Below are positions 7,553-57,144 of a stretch of DNA of 64,000 nt, piece by piece; the stretch's first letter is position 1; the number at the start of each line of letters is the position of its first letter. Source of the stretch: Bigelowiella natans CCMP2755 (taxonomy: Eukaryota > Protista > Cercozoa); the NCBI GenBank assembly GCA_000320545.1, contig ADNK01000765.1, positions 12,813 through 76,812 of the forward strand. Reading direction: 5' to 3'. A program made the translations under genes and the position numbers. The notes under the pieces are model-generated. The model saw only the letters and a program-made list of their open reading frames with translations, had not been told where the DNA came from and did not search any database.

Positions 7553-7737
7553 AAAAAGATTCACGAACTGTTGCGCGCAGCGCGCGACAACATCGATCGC
7601 ACGAGGACGCTTTCAAATGCATGAAGCACGTGGTGGCAGAAACCAACAGACACAATGTCAGCGCTGTAGCCGCTGCATTGCACAGCTACATCAGGATGAC
7701 CATTGAAAAAATTTAATTGTTCATTACATCCGTCTCA
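7553..7737 (+). mobile_element. LINE 3' fragment, subfamily A, inserted in the tail of the previous copy
   Basis: Near-identical to 38426-38610 and 56956-57144. Confidence 0.9.
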
Positions 7738-7770
7738 CATGCACACACACATCTAGATGTGTGTGATGAG

Positions 7771-8530
7771 ACGCCAGGGAAACTCAGTATTAGAGCGGAA
7801 GCATCGACCTATTAATAATGGGATTATGGCGATGCTCCTGCAAAATGTTGAGGATCGGCACAACTGGCATAAATATTTGGAGATGATAACATTTAGTGTG
7901 AATACCACAATCGATAAGTGTGGTTATTCCCCGGCTCACCTCATGTTCGGATATCAGCCAAAGTTCGTGGCTGATATGGAGAGCAAGTCGGTGGCGGCTC
8001 CAGGGACCGGGGACCTCGATAAGAGGATCCAAGATCTGGAAAAGATGCGGCTGTTGTATGCTACTATGAAAGAGGATTATAAATTAGTGAAAAATTTCAC
8101 GAGGAACGAGAAGCTTAATACTCAAGACGAATATAAAGTAGGGGATATGGTGTGGCTTTTCCGCAAGGAAAATCGTAAAGAAAATGCTGTTACGAAAAAA
8201 TATGAAATTAAAAAGACTGGCCCTGTGACTATCGTGGCCAGGAGTAGCAGATCCCATACCTATCAAATTATTGACCCGAAAACGGGGTATAATAATAATG
8301 TACACGCGAAACATCTTTCGCCTTATGGTACATTTACCCCGTTACCAGAAGTGCGCCCGGTAGCTCCAGATGTAGAGGAGAAATTTGCTGCCGACGAGAA
8401 TGAGGCTTCGGATGGTTCCTCAGACTCGTCGGATTCCCAGGGGCCTTCTGGTAACCGAATTTCGCGGGATAACATCGTCCGGGGTAAACGTAATAGGAGA
8501 CCGGCGGATATAGGTCCGTATATTTCGTAG
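7771..8530 (+). mobile_element. Ty3/Gypsy LTR-retrotransposon pol remnant (integrase C-terminal half)
   Basis: QGNSVLERKHRPI (P-Q-x-N-G-x-x-E-R motif with the third catalytic Glu), W..YL....F..NT....CGYSPAHLMFG, and a GPY/F-like region YKVGDMVWL...TGPVTIV...TYQI...VHAKHLSPY. The integrase lies at the 3' end of pol, before the PPT, as in Gypsy. Confidence 0.88.
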
Positions 8531-8679
8531 ATTTTGTATTTTCGCAAATATATGCTACTGTATAAATAAATTGGTGGCGGTGCAGTTGGTGCAAAATTTT
8601 TCTTTTCTTCCCTTTTCTTCTAATTTTCTTCTAGCACGCGTGATCCTACTCATATGTTGTTATTATTGAGTTAGGGGTG

Positions 8680-9361
8680 CAAAAATTGGGGGGGGGGGGT
8701 AGTGTGGTCAGTTTGCGACCACCAAATGCATGTAAGCGCGCATGTACATGCATAGCATAAATGGTAGTGCATGCTGTGCTTTATTATATCTTACATTTGC
8801 ATGTGAGCATGTTTATATAGGTTCAGGCTATCGTTCCTGTGCCTTAATTAGTCATATAGGGGCATGTAACGTGAGTTACATGCCCGGAAATACAGTTATA
8901 GGAGGGGGCACGTGCAACTGGGAACATCCTTCTCGGTTGTTTCCCCAACCGTGGATGTTCCTAGGAGCACCCTCGGTATTTTACTTACGACATGGAGTCG
9001 GCCTACGTATTGTAATATTATAGGGGAAAATGGCCTACATTTTCCCTAATATTTTGGGCAACTGCTGCTGCGTAGCATGTTGCTGCTGGGGACGCTGTGT
9101 GCCCAGCACATGATGTGTATTGGCGCGCAACGCGCTAGTTTAGCACACTCTAAAAGACCCGCAAGCAAGCGGTAAGCTTTCTCCTTTGGTAGTTTGCTCA
9201 TGCATGCTCATGTCATGTTATCTATTCAACAGGGTTTTAGTTTTGTGGATTTAAAGCATTGTAAAAGCATACATTGCACAGTTGTGTTGTTAGCGCTGCG
9301 CAATACAACTACAGTCATCATCTAGTCTAGGCAATTGCCAAATAGTGCAAGAGCCCTAACA
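8680..9361 (+). mobile_element. Polypurine tract and probable 3' LTR of the Gypsy remnant
   Basis: aaaaattg13t at 8681-8700 is followed by TGTGG at 8703. Candidate end ...ccctaACA at 9361; the right boundary is tentative because no second LTR is present. Confidence 0.55.
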
Positions 9362-9382
9362 GCAACAGCAATAAACATTGTT

Positions 9383-9470
9383 AATAGCGCTATAGCCGCT
9401 GCATTACGCAGCTACATATAAGGATGACAACATTGAACAAATTCAATCGATTCATTACGTCAGTCTTACA
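9383..9470 (+). mobile_element. Degenerate LINE 3' fragment
   Basis: agcgctatagccgctgcattacgcagctacat..aggatgac..cattgaacaaattcaat..ttcattacgtcagtctta, with several small insertions. Confidence 0.75.
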
Positions 9471-10026
9471 AGCGATGTGGACGTGTACCTGCTACGCAGC
9501 ATGGCTAGATGGGCGTGCGTGATTGGAACGAGCATGCATGTTGAAAAGTCGACGCAAGACAGGAGCAAGTGTACTGTGAGCGATGCAAAGTAATGTGTGC
9601 ATGTCATTCCCGTACAATTTAGCTTTACACGTATACATGATACCATAATTCACAATTTCACATTAATGTATCCTCGTTATTCTTTGTTAAACGGACTTAC
9701 ATCTGTAACGCATAGAGCACAATCAAGATGGCTAGTCCAAGCAAGTTGGCAAGTTGCACATATATGTCCAGTGGTTCTACTTATTTTCATTTAAATAGAA
9801 ACAGAATGTGTTGCAATATAAAATAACAGATATAACTGCTGGCCAGGTCTAAATGGAGATGGCAGGTGGTTGAGTAAACACTTCATTGTATTAATACTTT
9901 GACGCTTCACTCCAAAATAAAGTTATACCAAAGAAGATGGTCGTTAGTATTGTTATGATGATGGGGCCATGGTCTAACGGAAAAGTGAAAGGTTGACCAG
10001 ATTTTACATCGGATTGTGGACACCAG

Positions 10027-12367
10027 CTACATCGAAGAAGTTTGTGTCGCGCCGCTGGTAGGTGCGGCAGCAGCTGCATGCTTAGCTTTTTGTCGCCTAA
10101 AAACGGAAAGCATAATCCAGAATCACGATATATCATCGGTTCCCACATATGTCTGAATGAATACCTGCATGCAGCACAACGACAGATCCCTCTACAAGCA
10201 GGACAAGCCCAGCTAAAAAACAAAAAGGGTATGAATAAGAGACGGACTCTTGGACAAGAGTGGATGTGGAACCAAACGGAATGCAATCTGCGGGACTGCA
10301 GATTGAAGCACTACCTTGCCTGCTGTTCCGACGTTGGGGCATTTTCACTGTAGAACTTGTTCAAACAACGGTCACAATACCTAAAGAGTAGTTGTAGTAG
10401 TAGTAGTAGTAGTAGTAGTAGGGATTACTCTCACGGTGCAGAATTAGAGGTTAAGTAAAGCCATTACTTTTTCCTGCATCCCTGACGTTTACCTGGTACG
10501 GATTTAAGATATACAGATCATTTTTATAGAAGGTTTTGACTCGGAAGTACTGATTTGATTGCATCACTGGCCAAGAAAATGTGGAGTTTGTATCTAATAA
10601 CTTTACCTTTTCCCCGAAGTGACGGCAAGTTTTTGCACAGGATTAGGGAGGACAGCAGACATCTACTTTTGCACTGATAAGATGATACAAAGGAGGTATT
10701 GAGTTTCGAAATTATCCCATTTAAGTAAGAAAATAATCCGCTAACCTGGTGACAACTGGAGCCACTTCCATTTCCAGAGACTTGCTTAGACCCTGAAGCC
10801 GTAGCAGATGCGGTATTCGTACTGGAAGGTACATGGCTATTGTTGCTCCTTGCCACGTTATTACCACCTGCTGTTTATCCAGAACATGTGTTACTTAAGG
10901 ACAGTGGGGGGGGGGGAATCAATTAGTGGTGATACCTTTTCTTTTCTCCTCTTCCTCATCTTCATCCTCATCGTCCTCATCTTCGTCAGGATCATACTCG
11001 GGTGCTCTGGCTGGCTTCAAAGGAGGGGTATTTGGGAGCATTGCCTCCTTCGATGCAGGTATTTTTAATTTTTTATTCAGGTCTTGGACATCCGTCCGCC
11101 TTCTCTTGTTAGTCCAAAACCGTGTCACAGAAACAGGAAGCTGAAATTCGGCTCCCAAAGAAAGTAATTGTGAAGAAGTGCTTTCTCTTTTCTTCCCATT
11201 TCTCGTGAATTTACCCAAATTACGCACTTCACCATTTGCAATAATGACAGGGGCTGGGAGGCGAGTGCTCTCAGGCAGAGGGGAGCTAAGATCAAGATAG
11301 GAAATACCAGGAGGGTAGAGGGGCGATGGCATCGAAAATGTCGGCGTGGCAAGAGCAATATCATTCCCCGTTGAGAGGATAGATGAAGGAAGTAGATTTG
11401 GAGTGGATGATGGCTGTAAGGATGTTGACTGAGGGGTGGAGGATGGGTGCAAGGAGCTGCTTTTATTTCGTGCAGAGGAGATTGCTGGAGATACCATGCT
11501 GTCAATGAAGGTAGTAGCAGTGGTCATGTCAATTTTTCCTTTCGCCAGAGAAGAAGTTGAGGAAGAATTCGATGACGATGAAGTGGAATTTGAAGATGAC
11601 GAAGATGACGCCAACGAAACGGTTATTTTAGGCCCTACTGACACACTTGCTTTCTTGTTGGCATCTCTCTGTTCTCTATTGGATCGTCCTGATTTTAAGG
11701 GATCTGATGCTACGGCGCCTTTGCTCTTTAGCATCGATGCTGTTGGACCAGTCGCCGGGGGGGTGTTGTTGAGACCCCTCAGAGTGCCATAAACAGTGTT
11801 ACTACTCATCTTCTCAACGGGTTGCCTTCTAACTGTTGAATTAGTGGCAACTTTTTTTCCTTCCTCAAGCTATCTTTGACCCTCCCCCTCGTGTAGCGTC
11901 AACCTCTTCCTCACTTACTAGCACTGTCCTCCTGATGAACTTTACCAACCAGGCAACAGGTTGTGAGAGTCCTCCAAACTCAGGAGGAGATGCAATTTCA
12001 TTTCTAACCATTTCTAACTACGAAAGTATAAGGGTTGAACTAATTGAAACCGAAATTAATACATTGAATGTGAATGGGGCAAAGAAAAAGGGGGGCGGGG
12101 AGAGCACCTCCACTTCAGCTCTATCCTGATGATGTGTAAAGAAATCTGAAAGCTCGAGCACGCCCAAAACCCCATGGTTTTCTCGTTGAAATAGTCGACC
12201 GAAAAAATATTATGATGAAAGGTACAAGCCCCTTTTTTTTCCATTTTTAGAAGAGTGACGCTTGTAGGGTGAAAGTCGTTATACGAAAATGGTCTTGTTC
12301 GTGTGAGCTCGAGTCTGTGCAGTTCTTGTCTTTGTCGCCTGTTCCTAGGACTAAGGGGAATTTGCAT
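10027..12367 (-). CDS. Ser-rich protein with C-terminal zf-4CXXC_R1 (CDCA7-related RING-like) zinc finger; start uncertain
   Basis: Large low-complexity exon (ORF 10919-11809). Joined 3' exons read SSCHQ|CKSR..LILCKN..GKRQGCRKK|YCDRCLNKFYSE..|SWACPACRGICRCAACR|RQK; stop 10027-10029. Confidence 0.8.
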
Positions 12368-12778
12368 GCAGCAGTTATGAGTTTCTATAATTCTCCGGTT
12401 CTGGCTGTAATAATGCGCCGAAATAATTTTATTTCCATACATTATGTATGTCGGAGAAACGAAATATTATATAATTTTAAAACAATTTTCATCAGATAAT
12501 ATTTACCTGCGACAGCAAATATTATTATTTCTTTTCCCCCCGAGGAAGCGGCCGACACAGCGTCCACTAGGCCACTCTAGTCAGAGTTTTGACCGTAATA
12601 TATCGCATACAGTCGATTGTATTGTTGTAAGTTATGATCTTTTTTATTTCCTCATATAATTCTGATAGTTATACTCGATTTGGTCAAACGTATTATAAAT
12701 TGTTGCCTTATTAACGGAAATTTGTGGAGGAGAAGAACTAACACAGGAAAATTAGACCCGACGACTACTGATCCGCCT

Positions 12779-12926
12779 ATGGCGGATCTCCCGACCCAGC
12801 CCCCCATCACCTGTTCCTCTAGGTGAGTCTTTTCGTCCCTTTTATCAGCAGAACTATTGAAATAATCCTATTTCGGGATCTATAACCATATCCCCGCAAC
12901 CAGAAAGCAATCGAAATATCATGAAA

Positions 12927-12971
<45 letters not shown>

Positions 12972-14216
12972 ACAAATTGTGTCCCGTGCATTAGGAATGG
13001 GAAGGATGAGGGCACCCCGGAAGACCTTTATCGAAAGGTGGTAGAGATGTTGAGTCAAAGAGAGTGGGAATGTAATCTTTATTTTGTTACCAGGAGATTA
13101 CTTCGAAGGGAATCGAATACCTCGGTAAGGGATAGGGAATTTGAGACGGTAGAGACGACGAATCAACCTCTCTATTTTATCCACAAAGGTACCCTAAAAA
13201 GCGTTCTTAAATGGCGGTCAGCAATTACTGCCCTTGGAGAGCATATTCGAAGGTAGTGAAGGACAGAGTTGGAGTGTCGCTTGACACTCACCCCTTGTGC
13301 TATCATGTAGGACAAATTTCGATCTGCAGCAAAGCGCAAAGACGTTTACGATGAAGGTCGATTTTTATGCTTCAGTAGTACCGGTGTTGTACTGATGTGC
13401 TAAGCCTTGATTGACATCATTTCCTAGGCCGAGGCGTTGTTCCAGGCTCGTCAAGTTCGTCAAAATATCGACGATGCGATTGATCTTACGGTACGTAGGC
13501 TGAAGTTAAATTTGCGGTTTTCTGAACGAGACAGAAGCAATTTGCTATTTAATTTATCCCAGGAGCAAATCATGCGGATTCTGGATATGGTTGAAGCAGC
13601 ACAGTACGAAACCAACAACAAGAGATATTTCTCAGCCTTCAAGATTCTGATAAATCTGCAAAAGGTGGTGCGCTTGCATCTTAATTATTTCTTTTAGTGT
13701 CTCTTTAATTTTGCTCACAGTGTACGTATACGTTATCGACCACAGGATTATAACAAAGGGCCTTTCAAAGATATCGCCATAGTTACACAGTCAGGCCGTC
13801 GATAGCTTTAATCGCCACCCCTCTCTCGCTCGCTCTCTCTCTCTTTCTCTCTCTCTCTCTCCCCAACAATATTAATAACAATGTCGTCCTCCTATGTACC
13901 GACCCTTGATCATATTTTCTTGACCCTTTCGTTCCCTTATGTACGTAGCCTCTTAAATAGTATTGAGTCCATCCTCAAGTCCACACTCAAAGCCATGGAG
14001 AACGACCTTTATAAATGGTACTACGAGTTTATTACAACGAATGTTCATGTTAGTTACCCCTCCACGTTTGCTATATTTCAAATTCTATTGTCGTTGTAAT
14101 TGTTGTCGTGAACTATCAGGTATGATAGAACTAGGAACAGCTGCCAAGTGCTTGGTATTTGAGGAGTTTCTATGCAGTTTGTTGTCGTCGTCATTGATGT
14201 CTTCCGGATTTACTTG

Positions 14217-14254
<38 letters not shown>

Positions 14255-14270
14255 TCTATCTCTATGCAGG

Positions 14271-14305
<35 letters not shown>

Positions 14306-14827
14306 TGAGCGAATGGGATAGAGAGCGAAAGAGGGTGGGATGAAGCGGGGCTGAAGCACGGCTGTTATTAACACAACAACTACGACAACAACTATGACAA
14401 CGGCATCGACGCGCATAAACACTCACAGGTGCAATGATACTTGTGGAGATGGACCGCAAGTTACAGCTGGACAACGAGAGGAAAACGTCGTCTTGCACGC
14501 ATAACACTATGAGGAGGAGGGAGGGGGGGTTACAGTGATGATAATAATGAAGATACTGCGATAAACTTGATGCGAATGTCTACCCACCGTCCTACTAATC
14601 GTATAATCTCCCTTTTCCTTCTCAGCACTACCATCATCATGGTCGACATCACTATCACCATCGTTACTCAGGTCGCGACAACAGGCCTATTTGAGCAGCA
14701 TCGCGCCTGCGTTCTCCCGGTCCCTGTTCGCGCATGCCCCGTTGCTCACCAGGACGGAGCAAAGACCCATCCCCACAGGTAGTTGTAGCAAAGAAGTAGA
14801 AGAATAGTAAAATCAGCATCTGAAATA

Positions 14828-14863
<36 letters not shown>

Positions 14864-16189: not shown

Positions 16190-16221
<32 letters not shown>

Positions 16222-16800
16222 GGTGATACGGGGGCTGATACGTGTGAATTTTGGCTGCGCGAGTTGCAGAGGTGGCATTCACTTGTGTGCGAGCGTATGT
16301 GCGTATAGTGACGGTTGTGCCGCTGCCACAACCCACCGTTTATGCTGTTTTAGGTGTCCATTATAGACTGGAGCTCGAAGGAAGAACTCGTCCCCAACGT
16401 GTGGGACTCGCCACTGCAGGTACTTACTCGCTTACCTGCTGTTGGCAGACCATGATATTGGATGATGATGATGACGATGATGATGGATGATGATGGACTG
16501 TGGCGAAGAACTCATTCAGGGTACTGTAGATAGATCGCGCCCCAAAGCAGCAAATCACCTTTCATCGCAGCATTGCTGTCATAATGTCGAGTGTGCGTAC
16601 GTGCGTGTGTTTGCGTGTGCGTGCGTTCTTCTCTCAGTATCACACGATTGGTAATGAAGCCTTGAGTAAAGCAGCAGTGAAGATTGCCGACCAGCTCAAA
16701 GAGTAATTATATCAACACGTAAATACGCGCATATAATGAGTATATGGGAAATCCGACGCTGGAATGAATGACCCAATGACCTCAATCTCACAGCGTCACA

Positions 16801-25503: not shown

Positions 25504-25700
25504 ATTCTAGTTACGCATGCCCGTAATGATGTAGCCATGTCTAGATGCTTTTGACTTAAAAGCGACTGAACATTGATAAGATTGGCATTCATTCGCCAGA
25601 CTTCGAGTGCAGAAATTGTTGCGATGGTGACCGCCACAGTGCTGTGTTCACTGTCTTGTGGGCCATTAGAGCAGCCAAGCTGACGCAAGCTAGCAAGTTA

Positions 25701-26663
25701 TCACGCACAACGCTACGCACTTCACGCGCAAGCACAAAGGTCAGGAACGTCCAGACGTCCAGTCGCCTCCACTGCATGGTCCAACACGTCTAGACGTGCA
25801 TGTCACAGTGCATGAACACATCTGGACACAGCTAGACAGCTCTAGAGCTAGACAGCCGCAGACAGCAAAGATGATGACACCATGCTAGCATGGTCATGTG
25901 CAGTCTAGCAGTGCGTGCTGGCTAGCTGGCACCACTCTGGCACTGCTATGTACAGCTAGACTGCTGCACTGCTAGACTGGCGCTAGCTAGCTAGCTAGCT
26001 GGCTAGCTAGCCAGGCTAGCTAGCTAGAAGGCGCACTGCTGGCTAGACTGTCCACACCGACGTGCACCTGCTAGCCTGGCGCACGGACAGACAGGGCCCG
26101 GCCGGGAAACGCACGGGGCACGCCTGCCAGCACGGCGGTCGGGTGCTCCAGTCCAGCAGTGCTGCTCACTTCCTCACTTGCTCACTTGCTGCACGCGCTG
26201 GCGCGCACGACAATGCTGCTGGCTAGATGGTCACCACAGAAAACACGCTGTGCAGCATGTTCTAGATGTTGCCTAGATCACGCTGTGCACACGAAATGGG
26301 CTGCTACTGGACTGAGCGACCGTCCGCTAGACGCAGATCGTGCATCCAGATGTCGTCGTGCGCATCGCCGCAGCGATCGTGCAAAGTTGCATTGCCAGGT
26401 TGTTTTCGTGCAATGAGCTGGCAAGGACAGCCACGCACGTCGACGCACACCACATTGCATCTAGATTTCTTCAGGGCGAGATGGTGCAGTGTGACACTGT
26501 CACGGACTCAGACGCAGTCCCCCATCCCCCCACCCACCGGGCTAGCTGTGCAGGGTCTGTCTCGAAGAAGATGGTGTCTTGCAATGCAAAAAAATGTTGA
26601 TGGGTTTTGCGGGGCTCGAGACACTCTCGGTGGTCTCAGAACTTTCTCCATTTTTCTGTCGCT
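25701..26663. other. TpA-depleted, CTAG-rich hypermutated intergenic patch (decayed repeat of unknown family)
   Basis: By eye, roughly 30 TpA remain in ~960 bp. All but one (25951) are in CTA/TAG context. (GCTA)n arrays at 25982-26027. Confidence 0.8.
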
Positions 26664-35983: not shown

Positions 35984-36611
35984 AACGTACTCGCCGACAT
36001 AGCAATAATCCTGCATATTTCGTGTGTAAAATCCTACAGCTAGCTCTGAAAACTATCTACTGAGCATTGAACCATTAATCCTCATGCGTTGCGTGTGTCT
36101 ATATTGTATGTATAAGACGGATGTCATAGCAATGACATGATTTCATGTGCATGTGTGTGTGATGTGTGTGTGTGTGTGTGTATGATTGACAAAATAAAAG
36201 CACACGATCTAGCGATGGATGCTCGCCCTCTAGCGCGAGCAGCACGTAGCGCCACAAGCTACCAAGTCAGGTTCATGTTCTCACGCGTAGCACGTCGCAC
36301 ATGGCGCATGAACAACAACGACTTGCCCTTTGCTAGTTTGCGCGCACAAATAAACTCATCTCAACGGACCTGGCACCACAATTTGAACAATGTGTGGAGC
36401 CGCCCTAGCGCACTGTGAGTGCCATGTTGCATGTGCGCAAAGCACAGTGTTTTTCGGCGCAATTAGCTAGCTAGACAACGTTGGGGGCGATCAAGATCAG
36501 GCTAGCAGGGTTGGGTTTGCATGCTAGCTAGCTAACTGGCATGGGGTTGGGATCAGGATCAGCTAGGCCAGCAAACTAGCGTGACTGTGTGCACAAACAC
36601 CATGGTTAGCC

Positions 36612-38610
36612 ATGTTCAACATGTCACGTGGATGGGGTACCCGAGATGGCTCACGCAAGGCGGCCATTTTTTGTCTCATCCCCAAGGCCAACAAAGAACT
36701 TGACACCCCTCTCAACGGGAGAACAATTTCTCTCCTGCAAGTGGCTTCAAAAATGGAAGACAAACTGACAGAGCAACGTCTCCGCGAAGCTGTGCCCCCC
36801 AAAAACATTGGCAAACATCAGTGCGCATTCATGAAAAATCGATCCTGTGAAACTGCACTCACAAAGATGACGCAGTCAATCGAGGATGGAGTGTGCAATG
36901 AAAAGCTTGCAGCCATCACATTGTTTGCAGATGCCTCCAAAGCTCATCCAAAAGCCTGGCATTCCGGCATGATGCGCAAGTCACATGACAAATGCGGAAT
37001 GCGAGGCTCGCTGTTGCTGTGGATCGACGACTGGCTCAGAGATCGCACCGCAAGATTCAGATTTGGCAATGCTCTCTCTGAGCACATGAACCTTGGGAGC
37101 GGCGTCCCCGAAGGATCATCTCTCAGCTGTTTCCTTTTCATGACCTGTTGCGATGTTCACGAACAAATTGCCAACACAGATTTCCAAACGTGCTGTGACG
37201 ACGTCACCCCCTGCAAATCATTTTCGCCAAACCGATGGGGGAAAATGCAAGATGATGTCCAGGCCGACCTGAACCAAACGACGGACTGGTGCATGAAATG
37301 GCGGATGCGATTCAATGGGGACAAGAGCGGGCACCTCATGATTGACAAAAGAAATGAAGCCCACCGACACCAAACCTCCTGGAACATCTCTCTCAATCTC
37401 CAAGGCAAAACAAAAAGAGTCGACAGCGGCAGATGTCTCGGTCAGCGGACCAATCTTCGACAACAAATTGACCTTTGAAAAACATGCTCTTGCTTCTCAC
37501 CTGAGATTGCAAAAGAAGCGAAGGTTTTTGTCAAGGTTGTGTTGTTCCAGACACCTTGCACCGCCAAATGTCAGACTGAAATTTTGCAAATCATGGTTCC
37601 TTGCATCCAGCAGATGCGCAGCTCCAACATGGAGATCACGAAGAAACATGCGAATGAAACAGATGGATTCCATGGAATCCCAAACCCTGAAACGTGCATT
37701 GGGATTGCCTGGATCCATCTCCAACGACGTCCCCCACGTCCTCACTGGCACGTTGCCACCCCGATGTCAAACCAAAGTGCAGTGTGCTAAATCATGGTTG
37801 CGCACTCATGCATGGATCGACACAGGCAGCGGTCCTCAAATCCATGAGGGAATGAATGATTGGAGCAGTCATGGCTTCATCATTGAAAATCGAAAAATGC
37901 CAGATGGCACATCGTGGATTGATGTGTCCACAAATGCGTGGAACAAAGCATCCTTGTTTCGTCGGCTCAAATCGATCACTGACGATTTGTTAGATGACGA
38001 ATTGCCCACCGTTTTGGCGACAACAGAGGCGCTGAAAAAAGAACTGAAAAAACATCACAAGGTGGTGAAATCCTGTGCTTTCAACGAATTCGAAGAGGAA
38101 TGGTCCAATGATTCATCACGCGCTGTGCATCTCAAGAATCTTGGATTCCTCCCGTCATCTTCGATCACCGGCATCAAACCAAAACTTTCAAGTGTTGCTA
38201 CATCATGGATGCGCGCCATCTGTGGTGTCGGCAATCTTGGAAAATTCATGTTCTCACGTGGACAATGCACAGAGAAAGATGCCACGTGCGATGCATGTGG
38301 CATCCTGAAGGACATGGATCATCTCCTGCAATGTCCAACACACAGTCGAGAACAAATCAGATTGCGCAATCAAATGCGCGCGATCATGAATCGCAACGAC
38401 GACACGAACCGGCTGACAAAGGCTGAAAAGGACTCCAGAACTGCTGCGCGCAGTGCGCGGCAACATCGGTCGCATGAGGACGCTTTCAAATGCATGAAGC
38501 ACGTGGTGGCAGAAACCAACAGATGTGACATTAGCGCTGTAGCCGCTGCATTGCACAGCTACATCAGGATGACCATTGAAAAAATTTAATTCTTCATTGC
38601 ATCCGTCTCA
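36612..38610 (+). mobile_element. 5'-truncated non-LTR retrotransposon (LINE): RT domain plus C-terminal CCHC, one frameshift, hypermutated and catalytically dead
   Basis: LIPK..RTISLL, HQCAF...RS, DASKAH.KAWH, GVPEGSSLS, CCDD (YxDD position, 37191-37202), W...W.M.FN..K, RCLG|PIFD (7-bp insertion ~37443), CDACG...DMDHLLQC. Stop 38587-38589, then a ~20-bp UTR ending catccgtctc. Confidence 0.93.
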
Positions 38611-39394
38611 CAAACACAGTTGCATTTGTGCGCATGTGATGTCATGTCCATTGTCATGCAGGGTTGGGCTTGTAGGCAGGGTCGATCGGGTCAAAGGGAA
38701 ATTGCGACAGAGACTCATTGCATGCTAGCATGTGTCATGACGCAGCGTGACTGTCTAGCTGTGCTGTGCGCGCAATGGCACGACAGCAGTGCGATTCCAT
38801 GCGCCTGTGGTGCAACGTGCTTGTTACAGCTCACACGCACATGTGTAATAAGTGATCTGGACGCGACTTGTGACGGCTTATAGTTATGACGAACCTTGAT
38901 GCATGAGCCTATAGATTGATGTGTTAGAAATATACATAGGGATGTGCACATTAGCTTGCGCAACTATGTTCATGTGCTCATCATCTCACTGTGTTTCCTA
39001 TGCGTGCCTCTACCACATTGTAATGTTGTCGCAGCAGTGGTCCTATCTACATCCGATGCGGCCGCACACCGCAACCTGCGACTAACATTCAATACAAGCG
39101 TGCAGATCCGAGCCATAGGTCGAGAGCTGCATTGTTCGGGTGATTATACATGCTACAGCTTCCTCTTCTTCTTCTTTTATTGTTGCTGTTAGTAGCTCAT
39201 ACTTGCTATTTCTGTTCGTATGGTTTCATGATAGTATTTCTAGTCTGCTTTCGACGGCGATACAGCATTTCCGCGAAAAATAATAATGCGGGGCTACCTC
39301 CCTCTCACAGTGACACACATCATACTATCCTATATCCTTCAGAACTGCTAGAATTTAGCGGGAAGTTTACTCATATCCCATGAGGGCTCACTCA

Positions 39395-43866: not shown

Positions 43867-44174
43867 AGTATATTAATATATACTCTACACGTATGTCTAT
43901 TGTCATACAGGTCCTTCATGATGTATGACAGTATATATAATATGTATATACAGTGTATTATACATATGATATATATATACGTATGTCAATGGTCGTACTA
44001 ATATATAATGCGTTTGCTCGCGTATTACTTGCATAGCAACTACTTGCATGTAATGATGCTATTATAGCGCGCTTGGCTCCATGTACAGCACCGCAGATAT
44101 TGGAAAATTGATTGTTGAGTCTGACGTGACAGCATAGTCTTATATAAAATTTGCGCATTTATATTTCATTATTA

Positions 44175-44323
44175 CAATGCATTTTCATGCATGCATGCAA
44201 CATGTGACCAAGGAAACGAACATACACAATTTAAGCGCTGTAGCCGCTATAGGTACCGCTACATTGCATAGCTACATTAGGATGACCATTGGAAAAATTT
44301 AAACATTTCATTACATCCGTCTC
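44175..44323 (+). mobile_element. LINE 3' fragment (subfamily B), lightly mutated, with a 12-bp insertion
   Basis: Matches 7407-7540. It keeps TA where other copies have TG/CA (gctacattgcatagctacattagg). Confidence 0.88.
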
Positions 44324-44451
44324 ATATTTCATTGTTTACACTTTACACATCGTATGCCTCTATGCACAACTATGAGTTGCGCTACGTATACATGCAGCGC
44401 AGATGTGTGATGATGTATCAGATGCACCTAGCTAGCTTAATAATTGTACAT

Positions 44452-44512
44452 ATGAGACGGATGTAATGAATAATTAAATTTTTTCAATGGTCATCCTGAT
44501 GTAGCTGTGCAA
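44452..44512 (-). mobile_element. LINE 3' terminus, tail-to-tail with the previous copy
   Basis: atgagacggatgtaatgaataattaaattttttcaatggtcatcctgatgtagctgtgcaa. Confidence 0.88.
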
Positions 44513-44704: not shown

Positions 44705-44840
44705 TACAAGCGCTGTAGCCGCAGCTTTGCATAGCTACATTATTAGGATGACTATTGCATTAATAAAAGATTTAATTTTTACTAGCTTCCGTCTCACAAT
44801 TGAAAATTTAACATTCTTTACATCGATTCGTCTTACAATT
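44705..44840 (+). mobile_element. Degenerate LINE 3' fragments with multiple micro-insertions
   Basis: agcgctgtagccgc..ttgcatagctacatt(att)aggatgactattg...tccgtctca, followed by a second, more decayed terminus. Confidence 0.75.
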
Positions 44841-44998: not shown

Positions 44999-46537
44999 TC
45001 ATATTAGGCAACTCAATCCAGACTGAAGAGGATGAGGGATGCATCCAGTAGGAACATTGAAATTTGCTGCACCCGTGATAGGTTGTTGCGCTGGACAGTA
45101 GCTCTTACCTGCAGCCAAGGTTCCGTGAAGAGAACTTACTTGAGAAGCCGAGAGTTCTGCGGACATGATGATGGCCTGCCAAATTTTCCCTATGAAAGGA
45201 TATCCACCCCCTTCGTACTCATATCCAACATGTAATTCTTCCCCACCATTCACACCGCTGAATGACCCAGTGCTTTTGAGAATTCCGTCTATGTACACTT
45301 TCCCTGTGTAGGAACCTGCAGACACGGCGCTACGCGTGAAAACGATGGAATGCGCTGATACTCGTCCAGCGGAGTCAAATATCCCCGGACTAGGATCAAA
45401 TGAAGAGATGTAGTTTCCATCTTGAACACCTAGGGCGGTGTTTCCAGAATTCTTACCGACAAACCATTGAGTCCCGCCCGAGGTGTCTTTCCCACCGAAG
45501 ATCGCTGAATAAGTCCGTGAATTTGTTCCTGTGTACTGGAACCAGGCAGCCACGGTGTATGCACCACCTCCTCCACTTGCGGTAATCAAATCAGACATCT
45601 TGAGGCCTGTGTTGATAGAGCCAGAACTGAAGACAAGATGATCCCCCGAGCTGCTAACGCCACCTGAAATGGTTCCATCGTTCCCCCGTGCGCTAATATC
45701 CTTTATTACTCCGCCATTCACTGGACTTATGCCAGGGTTATAGTAAGCCACAACTGAATTTGGACAAACGGCTGCTCCACAGTGTAGATCATTTCTAGCA
45801 AGCCTTCCGTGAAGGATTGCCGCCTCTGCAGCACTAAATTCCGTTTTTAGGATAATTGCTTGCCAGATTTTGCCTTTGAACGAATAAGCTCCTCCGAATT
45901 CCTTTCCTATAGTGAGTTCCTCTTGATTATTGACACCAGTAAAGCTCGCACTTGCCTTAAACGCGCCATCGATGTACACTTTCCCTGTGTAACTGCCACC
46001 AGAAGCTGCGCTACGAGTGTAGATGATGGAGTGAGCTGACGCCCGTCCTGCGGCGTCGAATATCCCAGGACTAGCAACGAAATTGGAACGGTAGTTTCCA
46101 TCTTGAACACCAAGGGCGGTGTTGCCAGAATTCTTACCAATGAACCATTCAGTCCCGCCTGTGGCGTCTTTTCCACCAAAGATCGCTGAGTAGGTCTGTG
46201 AATCTGTTCCCGTGTATTGAAACCATGCTGCCACGGTATACGTACCAGCGCCACCGCTTGCCGCGATGACATCGGACATTTTTATCCCTGTGAGTATGGA
46301 GCCGCCATTGAAGGCGACATGATGGCCTGATGTGGACACACTCCCTTCCACGGTACCGTCATTGCCACGCGGCCCCAAGTCTTTCCATTTGCCACCTGAG
46401 ATCGGGGAGGCGTCTTGGTGATAGTAGGCCAGCACATCAGATGTACAACCCTGCAAAGCGTGAACGGGTGCGCTGAGTAGCAGCACCATCAAGAAATGGA
46501 GCACCCGTAATGTTCTATTTCCATCCATGGCCATCAT
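44999..46537 (-). CDS. Secreted protein with two tandem LamG/concanavalin A-like domains, single long exon
   Basis: Signal peptide ..VLHFLMVLLLSAPVHA. Two ~220-aa repeats: YY...WKD...GNDGT...YTVAAWFQYTGT...AIFGGK...GKVYIDG...IG..F.GKIWQAII...LS..E...LH. The ORF track starts at 46612, but the upstream part lies in an inverted repeat. Confidence 0.85.
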   Translation of the reverse strand: MMAMDGNRTLRVLHFLMVLLLSAPVHALQGCTSDVLAYYHQDASPISGGKWKDLGPRGNDGTVEGSVSTSGHHVAFNGGSILTGIKMSDVIAASGGAGTYTVAAWFQYTGTDSQTYSAIFGGKDATGGTEWFIGKNSGNTALGVQDGNYRSNFVASPGIFDAAGRASAHSIIYTRSAASGGSYTGKVYIDGAFKASASFTGVNNQEELTIGKEFGGAYSFKGKIWQAIILKTEFSAAEAAILHGRLARNDLHCGAAVCPNSVVAYYNPGISPVNGGVIKDISARGNDGTISGGVSSSGDHLVFSSGSINTGLKMSDLITASGGGGAYTVAAWFQYTGTNSRTYSAIFGGKDTSGGTQWFVGKNSGNTALGVQDGNYISSFDPSPGIFDSAGRVSAHSIVFTRSAVSAGSYTGKVYIDGILKSTGSFSGVNGGEELHVGYEYEGGGYPFIGKIWQAIIMSAELSASQVSSLHGTLAAGKSYCPAQQPITGAANFNVPTGCIPHPLQSGLSCLI

Positions 46538-46579
46538 CTGCATCGCTGTTGTGACGAAACCTACAAATTTACAAATTGC

Positions 46580-46937
46580 CCTAGATATATTACACATCGA
46601 ATTCAGGTTCATCTCTCAAGATTTCGTACTGTCATTGCGCGGCAAGACCAGAATGTTGCATGCGATTTTTGTAATGCGACATCCAGAATAGTCCCTGTAG
46701 CATAAAAATACCATCATTTCTGCCCATTCTGTGCGACGCTCGCTCGTAGCTCTTGTCGTCGAGCGATGCATTTAACTCATCTGGGTGAATTCCATGTAGA
46801 TCTAGATCTAGATCTAATCCATGAATTTCTAGACTTCCATGGACTACTTTAAGACCGACAGAAGACAAGTTTTGTTTTCGGAAATCCTGAAATCTTGAAA
46901 TCTTGAGAGATGAACCTAAAACCGAAATATATCTAGG
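46580..46937. repeat. ~360-bp segment bounded by bipartite inverted repeats (MITE-like)
   Basis: aggttcatctctcaagatttc (46605-46625) and gaaatcttgagagatgaacct (46897-46917) form a perfect 21-bp IR. Outer cctagatatatt / aatatatctagg form a perfect 12-bp IR. An internal (tagatc)3 lies at ~46797. Confidence 0.8.
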
Positions 46938-49010: not shown

Positions 49011-49050
<40 letters not shown>

Positions 49051-49516
49051 TGATGAATAATACGCACGCATGGATCAAAACTCAGAGTTTGAAAATGCCG
49101 AGAAGTCCCTCGAGAAGGCCAGAGAGTGTGGGCTTCAGACGAAAACTTTGTCGGTTATGCGCAAAAAAATCACGGCAGCCAGAAAGGAGCAGAGGAAGAT
49201 AATGCGAAATTTTCAGCAGAAAATGGTCCCCTCCTCCTTCCCCATCCTTACCCAATAAATAATCCCCTTCTCCTAATCTTCTTTCGCGTTTCTACATAGT
49301 AAGAATACCTGCACATAATGCCACTTTTAACATACACTTACATAAAAGAGGCTTCCATTTCCCGTGTTGCTCTGATTTCTCCATGGCATATTATTCGCCT
49401 TTGGCTCTCCTATCAGTTTTCTCCACATCCATTTCGGAGTGACAAGCCAACATTTTTCCTAATTTTAACCCGTGAACAACTAGGCTGCAAAGCTAGCCAA
49501 TGGAGCTACTTTATGA
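47144..49516 (+). CDS. TPR co-chaperone-like protein with N-terminal MVDYSRFD motif and His/Gly-rich segment
   Basis: Exons MVDYSRFDQL.., HGHKDGHGHAHGGHSCGHGHG, GKKFFQKGDYRTALQIYNRG, AIERCKM|ALAIDKKHVKAHYRMAQ and EFENAEKSLEKA; stop 49514-49516. Confidence 0.82.
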
Positions 49517-50041
49517 AAACTAAAACGGCTTGATAGGCCATGCGATGAATGCTAGAATGTGCATGATCTAGATGATTTAGTAGCCCAACGTATTCGATTG
49601 AATATGATCAAATTATTCAGCATGCTGCCACAACAAGTCTGTTTCTATTTATGCATGTGAGTCATTGCTGTGTCTGCATGCAATGCAATGTTGCCGTATC
49701 CTCAAGAAATTATCGATGTAGAGATATGTCTACATGTGCTTTTCCCTGCGCACATTTAGAACGTCTTCTCACCAACAATAATGTAACGCTCGCGCAGCAT
49801 GCTCATGTGTATGTGCCAGCTAAACTGGGCTCGCTAATATAGTAGTATCAAGGTTTCCAGTGGCTGCCTAGCACCTCGGCTAATATAAAGGTCAAAGCGA
49901 TTGCAATGATGCATCTAGACATACGCACATCTAATAAAAATTCAAAATCCAACTGCTTTATCTAGTCATATCCAAGCTCGCCACGAGATGGTGCCGTGCC
50001 TCCATGCGCACTGAAGGCACTGCTAAGCTAGTAAGGCATAC

Positions 50042-50120
50042 TTACAGAATCTGTAAAAGGTTGCGATGTCCAGACCATTACTTAAACCGACAAAATGTGA
50101 GAGACCATTCGTCGCCTTCC

Positions 50121-50163
<43 letters not shown>

Positions 50164-50643
50164 AGGAAAATGTGAATGATCAGAACAAATAGCTCAATAA
50201 CAACAATAACCACCTCGCATGATAACACACACACCTTTAGAGTTTCTGCCATCTTCGCTATCATTCCTGTTCGGTCGTCGATGCTCTCCCCTCCCTCCTC
50301 ACCGAACCTTTTGAAAGTGTTCCTCAACTCGCGGAGTTCCACTTCCCCCAGTCCTAGACGCATCTCCATTGCACGCTCTGTCGTGTCAGATAAACCGAGG
50401 TATTTCTGCGAAGAATCTTCTTCGTTATTCTCCTTGTAGCAGAGCAAGAGGAAGGCATTTCCTGTCGATGATTGATGAACAAACAGAGGCCTCTCAAGAA
50501 CCGTGCATTCAAAATAAACGCAGACATCAGCGCGGCCCCTTTCGGTGAAGATGGGGGGGGATGGGGGCATGCCAGGAGGAAGAAGCCGAAAGTATAGCAT
50601 AATTTATATCTTCAAAAGATATCTCTATATTTATACATCATTA

Positions 50644-50685
<42 letters not shown>

Positions 50686-53041
50686 TGTGTGTGTGTGCGT
50701 GTGTGTGTGCTATGTCGTACCACTTCTATAGTTGCTTTCCACGGTCACGATGTACACCTTATCAAATGCCTGTGATAGGATTCGGAAACAACGATGTTGG
50801 CTTCGACAAAGGTCAAAACAGCTACGATGGCGGCGGCTTTTGCCACTTACTTTCACCGCATTATACGCACACATGCAGCAGCTGGAATAAGCAGGTGGGT
50901 GAATACCACACACTATTCCAACCCTCCCCCCCCCCCCCCCCCTTCACCTCAACTGCCTTACGCAGGCACTCGCTCTTATGAGCCGGCGGTCCAACCATGT
51001 TGATGATAGCACATGCTGACCATTGAAGGAGGGGGGGGAAGAACAGAGCATCGATGAGGAAATCACTCTTCGGCGCCACTACGGCTGTATTGCTCACAAC
51101 ACGATCAATCCCACCAAAATGCGACCATCTCACCTTCTCTGTCGTCCCTCATCGCACGCCGGAAGCATGTGAAGTCGTCGAGGCCCTGATGGTTTCCGTA
51201 GTCGTAACAATCAATCAAGCGGCATCTTAGCTCAACTATGAACGAGTGTGGTGTAGGGCGCCTTCAGCAGGTGTCTCAGCGAGCAGGTGATCAACCATAA
51301 AGATGTGGGACCAGGCGGGATATTATTCAAATCGTTGCTTACTACTTTGGGAGGTGCTACGCCGTCTGCGAACGCATCATTAACTGGGGAAGATACGAAG
51401 AAGAAGAAGGAGAAGAAGAAGAAGAAGGAGAAGAAGAAGAAGAAGGAGAAGAAGAAGAAGAGGAAGAAGAAGAAAAGCGGGTGCATTGCAGAGATGAGCA
51501 CGTGCTTGGAGAGCACCAACAGAACAACGACTAACATTGACATCTATGTCATTTCTGCGGTCGCGGTGACGGGTGGGAGGTGTTGATTCCTACTTAATAC
51601 GTCAAACTTCGGAGCTGAGGAGGCACGATGATGAAGTTTTTCCTCAAGACACCCATTCTTGTTATCGAGTCCTCTTGATGATGATGATGATGATGATGAC
51701 GACGATGACGACGATGGCGATGACGACACGTATTCTGAACAAAAACGACAATTATTGATCATCACTCCTTACGACACCGTGCCTCCCCTCCTCCATTTCA
51801 GAATCATCATCGTCCATGATCATCATCCATCATTGTATCCAGAAAGCATTTGAGTGGAATGCTTGGGGGATGGCAGTTGCTTGTGCAGCACACGCATCAG
51901 TCGTTGTTACCTAGCAATGCTGCTCCATCTCCTTTAAGAAATAATGGCTCGTGTCTCCCAACACTACCAGCAGACGTAGCAAATGCTTCTTCGACTCCTA
52001 ATTATCACGAGCGTGCACACACAAACACACACACACACATAACTATATATTCATTCTACAAAATTAATATAGCAGGCCACTACATCTTCCCAAGAGACAC
52101 AACACACAGTTTCTATGATGATGAGCACAATCATGGCCATCCATGGACAATTCGGCAAAAACAGTGATCCGGCGTTGTGGTTGAGGAAGCCAACAATAAC
52201 GATAATAATGGTAGTCACAAAATGCATGTTAAGTAGCATCTTCCTACCAACCAACATCGGCAGGTATAGATACCATAACTACTACTTATTCGCTACTACT
52301 TGGTACACTATTACTACTACTACTACCACCCTCTATATAGTCTGGTAGTCCAAAAAACTGCGAACCAGCATCAAGAACCTGATGAATTATGGTGATGATG
52401 ATGATGATGGCTCTGATTGATGATATCCCTCAGTGAACGGCAGCAGCAATTCTACCACTACTAATGGTGATGATGATGATCTTATACTGTCATCGCATAC
52501 ATCGACCACCATCACTCGCTCATCCATCTTCCCAATCATAGTCAAACATGGATATTGTCATCGTTTATCATTATCATCATCATCATCATCATTATCAGCA
52601 GTAGCAGCAGCAGTAGCAAATTGACCTCCTTTTCCAATTCCACGGCCAGAATCTGAGTGTTTGTTGGTGGTGGTGCTGCTGCTGCTGACACCGCCGGCGG
52701 CCTCATCATCCTGGCAAGGAACATCGGTACTGCACCTGTGGGAAAGGTAACGAATACGTACCAAGTGGCGAGGAGAGGGGGGGGGAGAAAAGCATTCACC
52801 AAAAATGGTCGCTGTTCACTATTTAGAGTGTCTTTGTTCGTCGTCTTCGCCTCTATGATTTCCTTCACCCACCTGTGCCGGCTCCTAGCACACCGACAGT
52901 GACGCTGTTTGATTGGCTCACAGCGCCCTCCCCATCGTCTTTTTTGTCCTTCGTCTTCTTCTTCGTCGTCTCCTCGCGGAGCAGATGTCCCAGCGTAATC
53001 CAACTCATCGCTGAAACAACAGCGGTCAGGCTATTATTTGA

Positions 53042-53084
<43 letters not shown>

Positions 53085-54033
53085 ATACTCCATTTCAACA
53101 TTATATGGGGAGGGAGGTTCTGCTGCATACATCACTGTTGCTGGTGCTGGTACCTTTGTGTATGGGCATCGGAACTTTGGTATGCTCTGGTAGTAGTAGT
53201 AATAGTAGTAGTAGTAGTAGTAGGAAGAAAAAGAAGAAGACCACCAACACATCGCAGTAAGAGGTGTGGCAACTCACATTCAATCAATCATGAGTCCCCC
53301 CTCCACACACAATATAAAGCACAATAAGCGGCAGCGATTGATTAGCCAACTCGTCCACTTACCAGGGGCACCGGTGATCGGGTTAATGATGGCTTCGGTT
53401 TGTGACAGCCCAGGACTTGAATGGAAACTCAATGTACGAATGATCGTCCCCCCCTTCCCACCCCCTTGCCCTGATGCTTCTTCACTGTCCTCTCCCGGAA
53501 CGTGCTCGTGGATGTGATCCAGCACCTTGAAGCTATCAGTCTCGAGCAGAAGCTCAGTGCGGTTTTGTGAGAAGAATTCTGAGAGGAGGCCTGCGGTGAG
53601 GCTCTCGTCGATTTCAGATAGAAACTCCACGGCTTTTGGATAGCTGAGCAGGAGTGGGGAAGAGAGAGAGGAAGGGAGGAGGAGGGGGGGTTAGATTGTG
53701 TGTCCTCTATTTAAGCGATAGGCGGCGGCAGCGACACAGTTGAAACAAAATTTGGATCGTCTTATCTTTTCTTTTCTTTCTTCTCCAAAAACTCTGGCTT
53801 CAAGTAGCACGTAAAAGTGAAAGAGGATGCTGAAAACCACCTGTGCTCCCCCCCGTGCTGGTGCACGAGGTGAACGGCTAAGTCTCGTTTTATCTCTTCT
53901 GCTGTCACAACTGAGTCGGTGCTGGAGGAGCTTGTTTCACGTCCGAGCAGCTCGATTCCCTCGCATCTGCTGCTTTCGGCCTATTGGTTTAATGAAGAAA
54001 TGTTGACGAAGATGAGGTAGGTAGGTAGGTAGA

Positions 54034-54066
<33 letters not shown>

Positions 54067-54094
54067 AACAAGTAGCATATCTTTGTTGTCATAA

Positions 54095-54134
<40 letters not shown>

Positions 54135-55168
54135 GTAGTGCGGATGCCACAGCAGCGTGGATACAGCTACTACCTGCCACTCATGTCGAGAAATCAGTGA
54201 TCCAGGCCAGAATGGATATGTGCTGCGAACGCGCGCATACCGAGGGCATTAGTGATAAAATGATGTCAATAGATAGTATCACACTAGATTCTTTGCATTG
54301 CTATCACCTGCACGTTGTCGGACGCACTGGATGAATGAGACATTTGTTGTCCACAGACAAGAACAAACACTGTTCGCTCCCATCCATGTCAGTTCTCTTT
54401 AGGCGATACCTTTGGTTCAGAAGTAACATATATGCTACGTCATCACACCCCGAGACTCATAAATACAAAATAATCGGAAAAGTAGGAGGAGGAGGAGGAG
54501 GAGGAGGAAGCACCCACCCTTCAATCCCAGATTTCTCCTCCTTGCTTTCACAAAAATTCTTCACAAATTCAGATAGATCAATTTGAAGGTATTTAGCGAT
54601 TCTAAGCCCTTCTGACTTGTTCAACCAGACTTTATTCCGACGCCCCTACAAAAACCACCAGCAGCAGCACCACCACCAGCAGCAGCACCACCACCAGCAG
54701 CAGCACAAGGAGTAGGAAGACGAAGAGGCAGCAGCCACCAGGAGGGCACGATGAGTGATGATAACTCATGTTAGCATTCAATCCCAAACTGGAATGTGGG
54801 TATAGATAAGAACATCTCATTAAGTTTCGCTCACCCTGCAGCATTGGCCGCACTCGGTGCATTTAAATTTAAGGCCATCGCGGAACCACGGACTGTTGTT
54901 TTCGCCTGCTGGATCCTGCGCCGTTGCAGTTTCTACCATTTACCGTACCAAAAGGTTGTAAGAATGACATTCGAACATTCGAATCAGATCAAATCATTTG
55001 TCAGCTGAACTGAAGAAGCCACAAGCGATAGTTATTACCCGTAGTTGATGATGATGATGAAAGCTCCCGAACCGAATGATGTCTACATCTAATCGCTGCA
55101 CGACGGATTGAGTTTGACCGCCTTATTCCTTCCCGTATCACATGCTTCATGACCACAAGTCTGCGCAT
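50042..55168 (-). CDS. YkgJ-family (CxxCxxCC) cysteine-cluster domain fused to a spermidine-synthase-like/METTL13-C-type SAM methyltransferase domain
   Basis: PWFRDGLKFKCTECGQCCR, CLFLSVDNKCLIHPVRPTTC, TYPFWP, RCEGI; then RTLSFHSSPGLSQTEA, VGVLGAGTG|AVPMFL, ILAVELEKEV. Arg/Ser-rich N-terminus from ATG 55168; stop 50042-50044. Confidence 0.72.
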
Positions 55169-55640
55169 CGAGAGTAGGGCAAGGTAATTTTAAGAAACGG
55201 GGATTAGTGTGGAAGGGGACGGGTTTTACCTATACGCGCTGTGCCCCCTCGGCGAACGCTCCCGGATGAATCAAGACTTATTTTTTCTGAACATGAAAAT
55301 GTATGAGACGCAGCACATTCCATTTTTGCCATACGACAATCGTTTTCGTTCTAACGCAGGAAAAAAACCATCGGTAGTTTCGGAACCGTAAAAGAGATCA
55401 TTCCCTCCCCGCAGATCTTCCGTTTTGAATTGGTTGGCATTTTGTGCACGTTGGCGTTTGAACGGAGCACGGAGGGAAATACTTTTTCGCGACAAGAATA
55501 TATGCGAAGTCTCAGGGACTGAATTGCATGCCTTCTCCTGTTGGCGAAACAACAGTCTGGCAACAACATCCTCCGTCCCTTCGCACATAAGCGAACGCGC
55601 AACCCGAACGAGAGGAAGGAACAGCACCTTGAGCTCAATA

Positions 55641-56392
55641 ATGGAGAACCTCTTCCTGAAGATTGTTGCCGGAGAGATCCCATCGCACAAAGTGTACGAA
55701 AACGACCTGGTCTATGCCTTTCTGGACATAAACCCGCTCTCACCCGGCCACACACTCGTCATTCCGAAGGTGGCACCTGCTTTCACGATTATGGAATCTG
55801 AACTGGACTGTGTGTGTGTGTGTGCGCGATGATGATGATGATGATGATGATGATAATGATGATGATAATGATGATGATGTGTATTGAATTGAAACAACGA
55901 CGGTGTTGTACTACTTCATCATAGAAGAAGTACAAAACCCTGGATGAAGTTCCTGAGGAAACAGCCGCGGCACTCGGAGCAGCTCTGCCTAAGATTGCAA
56001 AAGCAATCATGAAGGTCATATATTAATTGGCTCGAAGAATACGCTCTGTTCTAAATAAAAATTGCAAACTTAAAAGGCAACGGAGTGCAAAAACTACAAT
56101 ATTCTTCAGGTTAGTGTTGCAGATGACCTTGCAATCCAACACTTCCTTCCAATCTTTACTTGATGCTCATGCCATCGCAGAACAACGGGAAAATTGCACA
56201 TCAAGAAGTACCCCACGTGCATTTCCATATCATTCCAAAGCCAAGCAAAGATCAGGGCCTAGGAGTGGGATGGTACAGATCATTTTTACTCTATGTTGTA
56301 TTTCCACATGTTGAAGCAAGAATTATTAAAGGCCGAGTAAGAAGCTGCAAAACGGGGAGGAGCTTGCGAAAATGATTACAGCTGCGTTGTAA
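55641..56392 (+). CDS. HIT-family (HINT-like) nucleotide hydrolase, 5 exons
   Basis: [40 protein letters not shown] ... YNILQ|[19 protein letters not shown] (HxHxH); stop 56390-56392. An upstream in-frame extension is possible. Confidence 0.93.
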
Positions 56393-56732
56393 TCTGACTT
56401 GTCAGCAAGAAGCAAGCAACCTCGTAACAGTCAGACAGTGCAAACGACTTCGAAGATATTGCAGGAATCAACAGGCTATATCTAGCGAAGACTAACAAAA
56501 AAATAGTTTTATGCAGAATGAGCAAATGCCGATAATTGCTTGCTCAAGTCAGAATCAGTGACACATTGTACCAGTCATATACATGCAAAACTTTCATATC
56601 TAGTAGATTCGTGAAATCCGTAATAGTGAGGTGTACTACGCTAATAAGCTGCCACGATGATGAACACGCGTGTGTGTTGATGATCTGTGTGACGGAGTTA
56701 TCGTATTGTATCATGCAGCAGCGCTAAATAGG

Positions 56733-56767
<35 letters not shown>

Positions 56768-56825
56768 TATACATGTGTACATGTACATACACATGTATAC
56801 ATGCATACAATATATATGTATGCAT

Positions 56826-57144
56826 AGGCATCCTGAAGGACATGGATCATCTCCTGCAATGTCCAACATATAGTCAACAACAAATCAGATTGCGCAATCA
56901 AATGAGCGCAATCATGAATCGCAACGACGAGACGAACCGGCTAACAAATAGGCTGAAAAAGATTCAAGAACTGTTGCGCGCAGCGCGCGACAACATCGGT
57001 CGCACGAGCTAGGACGCTTTCAAATGCATGAAGCACGTGGTGGCAGAAAGCAACAGACACAACATTAGCGCTGTAGCCGCTGCATTGCACAGCTACATCA
57101 GGATGACCATTGAAAAAATTTGATTGTTCATCACATCCGTCTCA
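56826..57144 (+). mobile_element. LINE 3' fragment (subfamily A) inserted in a partly converted (TA)n array
   Basis: Aligns to 38299-38610 with TA and CTAG insertions at 56949 and 57009. Confidence 0.92.

Follow-up and report, generated by a model that had tools for sequence, protein, structure and literature searches.

Copy-by-copy TpA-to-TpG/CpA hypermutation of a LINE family in Bigelowiella natans, with a likely mark on the source lineage

We analyzed a 64-kb window of the Bigelowiella natans genome (here, the whole stretch of 64,000 nucleotides), which contains at least ten pieces of one long interspersed nuclear element (LINE) family. Copies of this LINE carry TpA dinucleotides changed to TpG or CpA, specifically at TpA, on both strands, and independently between copies, with a load that is near all-or-none per copy, with partial sparing of CTAG and related contexts, and with mostly silent changes in the source lineage. 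TpA hypermutation has already been described for B. natans (10.64898/2026.01.13.699255), and the LINE is a further instance; new here are the copy-level evidence, the near all-or-none load, signs of selection in the source lineage, and the order of sequence contexts in which TpA is spared. The genome searched was the B. natans assembly (91,405,885 bp in 3,736 contigs; PMC12730881 Table 1 gives 91.4 Mb and 3,736 contigs), from which we compared 30 copies, a sample that favors long ones.

The longest window copy (positions 36603 to 38610; Table 1) has only 9 TpA left in 2,008 bp, with 63 of its 74 TpA sites altered, and is 93% identical to young copies. Its reading frame is broken near 37400, its two reading frames hold one tyrosine in ∼700 codons, and the catalytic Tyr codon has become Cys, giving CCDD where young copies have YCDD. 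In the 2-kb bin from 36001 to 38000, the observed/expected ratio (O/E) was 0.28 for TpA and 1.57 for TpG/CpA; across the entire window, the two ratios were 0.77 and 1.20.

The full element is 4,958 bp long, with open reading frame 1 (ORF1; 486 amino acids [aa]) followed by ORF2 (1,179 aa; APE endonuclease and reverse transcriptase [RT] with YCDD). In copy L031, PF14529 (E = 9e-18) and PF00078 (E = 7e-18) both match the 1,179-aa ORF2, and ORF1 lies upstream. The family shows a common 3′ end, variable 5′ truncation, and no long terminal repeats (LTRs). It resembles APE-type non-LTR retrotransposons in having ORF1 and ORF2 (APE endonuclease, RT, and a C-terminal CCHC knuckle) and in its frequent 5′ truncation. 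The closest solved structure is human L1 ORF2p, to which the similarity is weak (E = 9e-9), and the LINE 3′ ends adjoin TA/CA repeats, whereas the APE-type/L1 reference has poly(A) instead. The 3′ ends often adjoin (TA)n runs (window positions 6849 to 6939; the 3′ flank of copy L011), suggesting either insertion into TA microsatellites or a TA-repeat tail.

Eleven young long copies are 99.5 to 99.9% alike and have intact ORF1 and ORF2. The family is collapsed in the assembled contigs, and read depth gives a rough figure of 14 to 20 young near-identical copies in the genome. The column majority of the young copies served solely to label TpA sites. At the 203 sites labeled in this way, the load was 0 to 8% in 16 copies, 33% in 1, and 60 to 97% in 13 older ones, confirming that it differs per copy, as had been claimed in an earlier reading of this DNA made from the sequence alone. 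Two copies, L029 and L030, have common flanks and 14 of 16 states alike and are probably the product of a segmental duplication after mutation.

As the sequence-only reading had proposed, the direction of change is TpA to TpG/CpA, with TA ancestral, because of the polarity of the Tyr codons, the rarity of CG at these sites, and the stability of existing CG sites. The intact young copies keep both TpA and YCDD. Across copies, the catalytic Tyr codon reads TAC in 13, TGC in 8, CAC in 4, and TAA in 1, and mutated copies have CCDD or HCDD. Among the ORF2 Tyr codons of mutated copies, 110 have become Cys, 77 His, and 3 Arg, while 16 remain Tyr. This polarity bears on classical repeat-induced point mutation (RIP), under which CA/TG would be ancestral and the TA-rich copies would be the mutated ones. 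The same three dinucleotide states occur, and short old fragments are richer in TA than long copies, as RIP would have it. However, it is the TA-rich copies that are intact, near-identical, and transcribed and that have YCDD; the TA-poor copies have near-random TG or CA at the same sites, which a CA or TG ancestor cannot yield; and the de novo direction reported for B. natans is TA to TG/CA (10.64898/2026.01.13.699255). Tyr-codon polarity and the random TG/CA states together rule out classical RIP, to which we assign a negligible probability.

Pooled over 1,116 site observations, the altered states at TpA sites were TG (478), CA (358), and CG (11). A further alternative is a CG ancestor decaying to TG and CA through methylcytosine deamination. 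CpG is indeed the most mutable background context (∼1% in recent copies), but CG is almost absent from the sites in question, where the intact copies have TA, and 729 of 767 young CG sites are still CG in mutated copies. CpG decay is ruled out on polarity and has virtually no chance of being the explanation.

The changes are highly specific. Copies L034 and L016 lie close to the young clade, and TpA transitions make up 68 of 75 and 60 of 67 of their differences, respectively; the rate of change is ∼90% per TpA site versus 0.3 to 0.6% per other A. Each copy carries a mixture of TG and CA outcomes along its length, which indicates action on double-stranded chromosomal DNA. As TA to TG/CA cannot make a stop codon, saturated copies can retain long open frames; that of copy L035 spans 1,198 codons with 0.2% Tyr. 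A-to-I editing of LINE RNA ahead of reverse transcription would fit the preference of ADAR for U before A (stated in 10.64898/2026.01.13.699255), a mild sense-strand TG excess, and the antisense RNA present at the LINE 5′ end. It does not fit the 43% of sense-strand changes that are T>C, intermixed with A>G in the same copy, nor the RNA reads across the LINE 5′ end, which carry unmutated alleles with A unedited at these sites, nor the TpA poverty of a single-copy flank. Strand symmetry excludes RNA editing as the sole cause; it could at most contribute the small TG excess, and we consider it an extremely unlikely source of the pattern.

The sequence-only reading had held that mutation follows insertion, copy by copy, and had predicted beforehand that an alignment and phylogeny would show TG and CA to be homoplastic. 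On a tree built from non-TpA columns only, the consistency index was 0.38 at TpA columns and 0.74 elsewhere. Near-saturated copies agreed in their TG/CA states at mostly 0.5 to 0.7 of body sites in pairwise comparisons, where inheritance would give ∼1; the slight excess over 50% may come from site preference. The alternative is that a few mutated source elements spread their TG/CA states. The young copies do have a few TpA changes in common, and most of the 25 columns of the 3′ tail are common to all long copies, but saturated copies lack the catalytic Tyr and are hence not autonomous sources. Inheritance is refuted for the element body and holds for the tail; as the explanation of the pattern at large, it is very unlikely.

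This division between body and tail also sorts the examples on which the earlier reading was built. All nine quoted strings are where it had placed them, and its 15-mers at 38521, 57055, and 7648 are homologous 3′ ends of one LINE family (89 to 93% identity over 193 to 328 bp). The quoted LINE examples, however, come from the final 330 bp of the element. The active lineage is itself nearly devoid of TpA there: O/E is 0.10 to 0.19 past position 4200, as it also is over the first 350 bp, compared with 0.4 to 0.9 between. Taken as post-insertion events, these examples stood only in part: only at the middle site does the 38521 copy have a private state, and most of the other sites carry inherited subfamily states. 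The first site of the 15-mer, read as independent hits, splits cleanly into CA in the older subfamily (57055 and 7648) and TG in the younger, and the three states TG/CA/CA at 38545 are common to nearly all long copies, the intact young ones included. The additional non-TpA differences (gattc/gactc and ctgttg/ctgctg) exist but separate subfamilies, ctgctg also being present in intact young copies. The match between the two instances of the unrelated 20-mer (38643 and 43892) exceeds chance: its degenerate pattern has 4 genome matches versus 0 for the reversed control, where we estimate that ∼0.01 would be expected, and all three states TA, TG, and CA occur at two of its three sites.

A wider A:T-to-G:C bias, of which TpA would be the hotspot, was not borne out. 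In recent heavily mutated copies, the ratio of private RpA>RpG to RpG>RpA rates (R, purine) was 0.90 (P = 0.86), and in old copies it was 0.59. A first count had given a ratio of 1.35 (P = 0.07) after dropping CA/TG-to-TA events; the value of 0.90 comes from the symmetric purine-context test.

The TpA changes common to young copies allowed us to look at the source lineage itself. We considered 25 ORF2 sites with TG or CA in the young copies and with TA or the opposite state in two or more older copies. Of these lineage-fixed changes, 19 (76%) are silent (P = 2e-4), the expectation over all TG/CA sites being 39%; among post-insertion TpA changes, 29% are silent. The excess suggests that hits reached the source lineage during its active life and that mainly silent changes were kept. 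Source elements would take occasional TpA hits, with selection retaining those that still work, and lightly hit copies may sometimes stay sources, so that the active element would lose TpA at its two ends.

Sparing of TpA depends on flanking bases, in the order CTAG > GCTA/TAGC > other CTA/TAG > rest. Outside the LINE family, we took 300-bp windows that are TpA-depleted when the tested classes are disregarded and compared TA as a fraction of TA+TG+CA with its value in ordinary windows; the ratios were 1.43, 0.66, 0.35, and 0.10 in that order, the value for the rest being low by construction. Inside the LINE, with the tip left out, retention was 19/69 for GCTA/TAGC, 18/154 for other CTA/TAG, and 8/536 for the rest (few sites). 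A rule limited to GCTA/TAGC was too narrow, the retest giving the graded order with CTAG. In the accessible text and supplements of 10.64898/2026.01.13.699255 we found neither a flanking-context rule nor CTAG, and searches of the literature on N6-methyladenine and chlorarachniophyte methylation turned up nothing on a TpA or CTAG mark. Genome-wide, GCTAGC occurs 44,612 times and the reversed string 15,750 times, a rough hint of sparing given that this control differs in dinucleotides. A GC-rich, TpA-depleted patch at window positions 25700 to 26660, in which no LINE match was found, has 26 of its 30 TpA in CTAG, along with tandem GCTA runs.

The flanks of many saturated copies are normal in TpA density, which indicates that the element itself is the target; here too, then, hypermutation is localized to foreign or selfish DNA. 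A general neighborhood effect was dropped for the same reason. Some flanks are depleted, those of the longest window copy among them. Its 5′ flank has no second match in the genome, and CTAG holds 11 of the 18 TpA remaining there, with GCTA/TAGC holding nearly all others. The two halves of the candidate target-site duplication match exactly and contain no TpA, a hint that this LINE copy may have inserted into an already converted tract. Short fragments retain more TpA (54/159 versus 14/323), a difference confounded with subfamily age and the spared 3′ tip; a length threshold as the trigger was suggestive and set aside on the same grounds. At ∼1.1e-5 per TpA per generation, a rate computed from figures in 10.64898/2026.01.13.699255, 90% saturation takes ∼2e5 generations, during which neutral change stays below 1e-4 per site, and such fast saturation fits the all-or-none load.

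Copy L034 is partly mutated: alterations occupy the 704 bp at its start and the 2.1 kb at its end, with ∼97 TpA between them untouched. The reads did not confirm its 5′ mutated patch or spared middle, and an assembly mosaic is possible; its 3′ alleles at 7135, 7152, and 7804 to 7828 are seen in reads at single-copy depth. Reads of RNA run X21 map to one strand over the 5′ 730 bp of the element (L034:4246-5037) and are almost absent from the ORF2 body, and a spliced joint at L034 4528 to 4803 has ends compatible with an intron in antisense RNA. The 5′ mutated patch occupies the same span as these RNA reads. It also adjoins a depleted high-copy repeat (L034:3850-4245; read depth, 100 to 300 times single copy).

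Mettrop et al. (10.64898/2026.01.13.699255) reported 231 de novo mutations in B. natans mutation-accumulation lines, almost all at TpA and A>G/T>C, and two viral inserts (nucleocytoplasmic large DNA virus [NCLDV] and virophage regions) that mutate ∼1,000 times faster than the rest, in some lines only. RT and endonuclease-RT Pfams were enriched among TpA-poor coding sequences, transposable elements were called "potentially" targets, and an ADAT2-like deaminase was proposed as a hypothesis. This viral-DNA hypermutation has the spectrum seen in the LINE, TpA to TpG/CpA on both strands, and is likewise regional and on/off. The preprint, in its available parts, has no per-copy LINE analysis and no split between inherited and post-insertion changes, both of which the LINE supplies. 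As a side observation, its Table S2 lists four NCLDV-region T>C changes in ATG or ATT contexts (non-TpA), while its text says one off-motif.

Very probably, then, a host process acting on chromosomal DNA replaces A by G within TpA, on either strand, in selected regions, and is the same process as that measured in the mutation-accumulation lines. Some points weigh against this. In the preprint, de novo hypermutation was confined to the two viral regions, with none in LINEs, repeats having been largely filtered from the callable genome (10.64898/2026.01.13.699255). Our sample of copies is skewed to long ones resembling the window copy, and the mild sense-strand TG excess (370:270 in the 3′ 2 kb; P = 9e-5) has no explanation.

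Under such a host process, long LINE copies would become targets some time after insertion and then quickly saturate, which would destroy nearly all Tyr codons, the catalytic one included, without creating stop codons. As to the chemistry, adenine may well be deaminated to hypoxanthine where chromatin is silenced; the remaining probability goes to a route in which adenine is first marked and then processed mutagenically and to error-prone repair. A fuller scenario, which we offer as speculative and rather doubtful, has an RNA- or chromatin-guided mutator starting at the LINE ends, both in the 5′ 730 bp under the spliced antisense transcript and at the high-copy 3′ end. The active lineage would lose TpA at silent positions in a running contest, and CTAG-type sites would be shielded by a sequence-specific mark or by enzyme preference. 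If true, the LINE family would be a natural reporter for identifying the trigger and the enzyme.

RIP of ascomycete fungi consists of dinucleotide-specific transitions on both strands that saturate transposon copies in place and can extend into flanks. The LINE process shares the both-strand dinucleotide transitions and the saturation in place but is opposite in direction and base, as RIP changes C to T at CpA and creates TpA. RIP requires homologous repeats and a sexual stage, whereas ∼14 to 20 near-identical young copies are almost untouched here. RIP also acts on repeats, while the main B. natans target in the preprint is single-copy (10.64898/2026.01.13.699255). Editing of retroelements by ADAR/ADAT and APOBEC is similar in its deamination-type transitions and 5′ neighbor preference but acts on RNA or cDNA and leaves one-strand signatures, whereas the LINE process strikes both chromosomal strands.

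The features of the window are collected in Table 1. An extra minus-strand LINE 3′ tip was spotted by eye at about 57430 to 57480. The 537-aa ORF contains an internal duplication (45285 to 45642 and 45966 to 46323; 77% identity).

Table 1. LINE pieces and other features of the 64-kb window
Feature	Position	Strand	Evidence
Fatty acid desaturase exon	2438-2989	+	PF00487, E 5e-13
Old short 3′ tip	3621-3688	-	Alignment
Short 3′ tip adjoining (AT)20 microsatellite	6885-6939	-	Alignment
Diverged 3′ fragment, ∼70% identity to main family	7240-7546	+	Alignment
∼190-bp 3′ fragment, older subfamily	7553-7745	+	Alignment
257-aa ORF, TpA-rich, beside two LINE fragments	7757-8530	+	Weak Pfam match below cutoff
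Old short 3′ tip	9385-9471	+	Alignment
TpA-poor 5′ flank of long window copy, ∼420 bp	36185-36602	.	TpA counts
Candidate 9-bp target-site duplication, TpA-free	36592-36600, identical to 38609-38617	+	Sequence, inferred
5′-truncated LINE copy: RT domain, C-terminal CCHC knuckle, 3′ end	36603-38610	+	PF00078, E 1e-15
TpA-poor 3′ flank of long window copy	38611-38830	.	4 TpA in 220 bp; 20 in next 270 bp
20-mer of small unrelated repeat, converted state, inside 3′ flank of long copy	38643-38662	+	Exact string
Same 20-mer, TpA-retaining state	43892-43911	+	Exact string
Short 3′ tip, diverged subfamily; TpA largely kept (5/8 variable columns)	44177-44327	+	Alignment
Short 3′ tip, inverted relative to copy at 44177	44445-44512	-	Alignment
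Old short 3′ tip	44709-44798	+	Alignment
537-aa ORF, two Laminin_G_3 domains, normal Tyr content	44999-46612	-	Domain match
325-bp 3′ fragment, older subfamily; TpA kept at 4 columns, long copies mostly TG/CA there	56820-57144	+	Alignment

The LINE copies give direct evidence for retrotransposons as targets of TpA hypermutation, a point left open by the preprint, and the process is a mirror image of RIP. They place three constraints on the mechanism: copy number alone is no trigger, flanking bases modulate the outcome, and source elements can be hit yet survive. With its young, partly mutated, and saturated copies, this one sequence offers a ready test set for long-read modification mapping.

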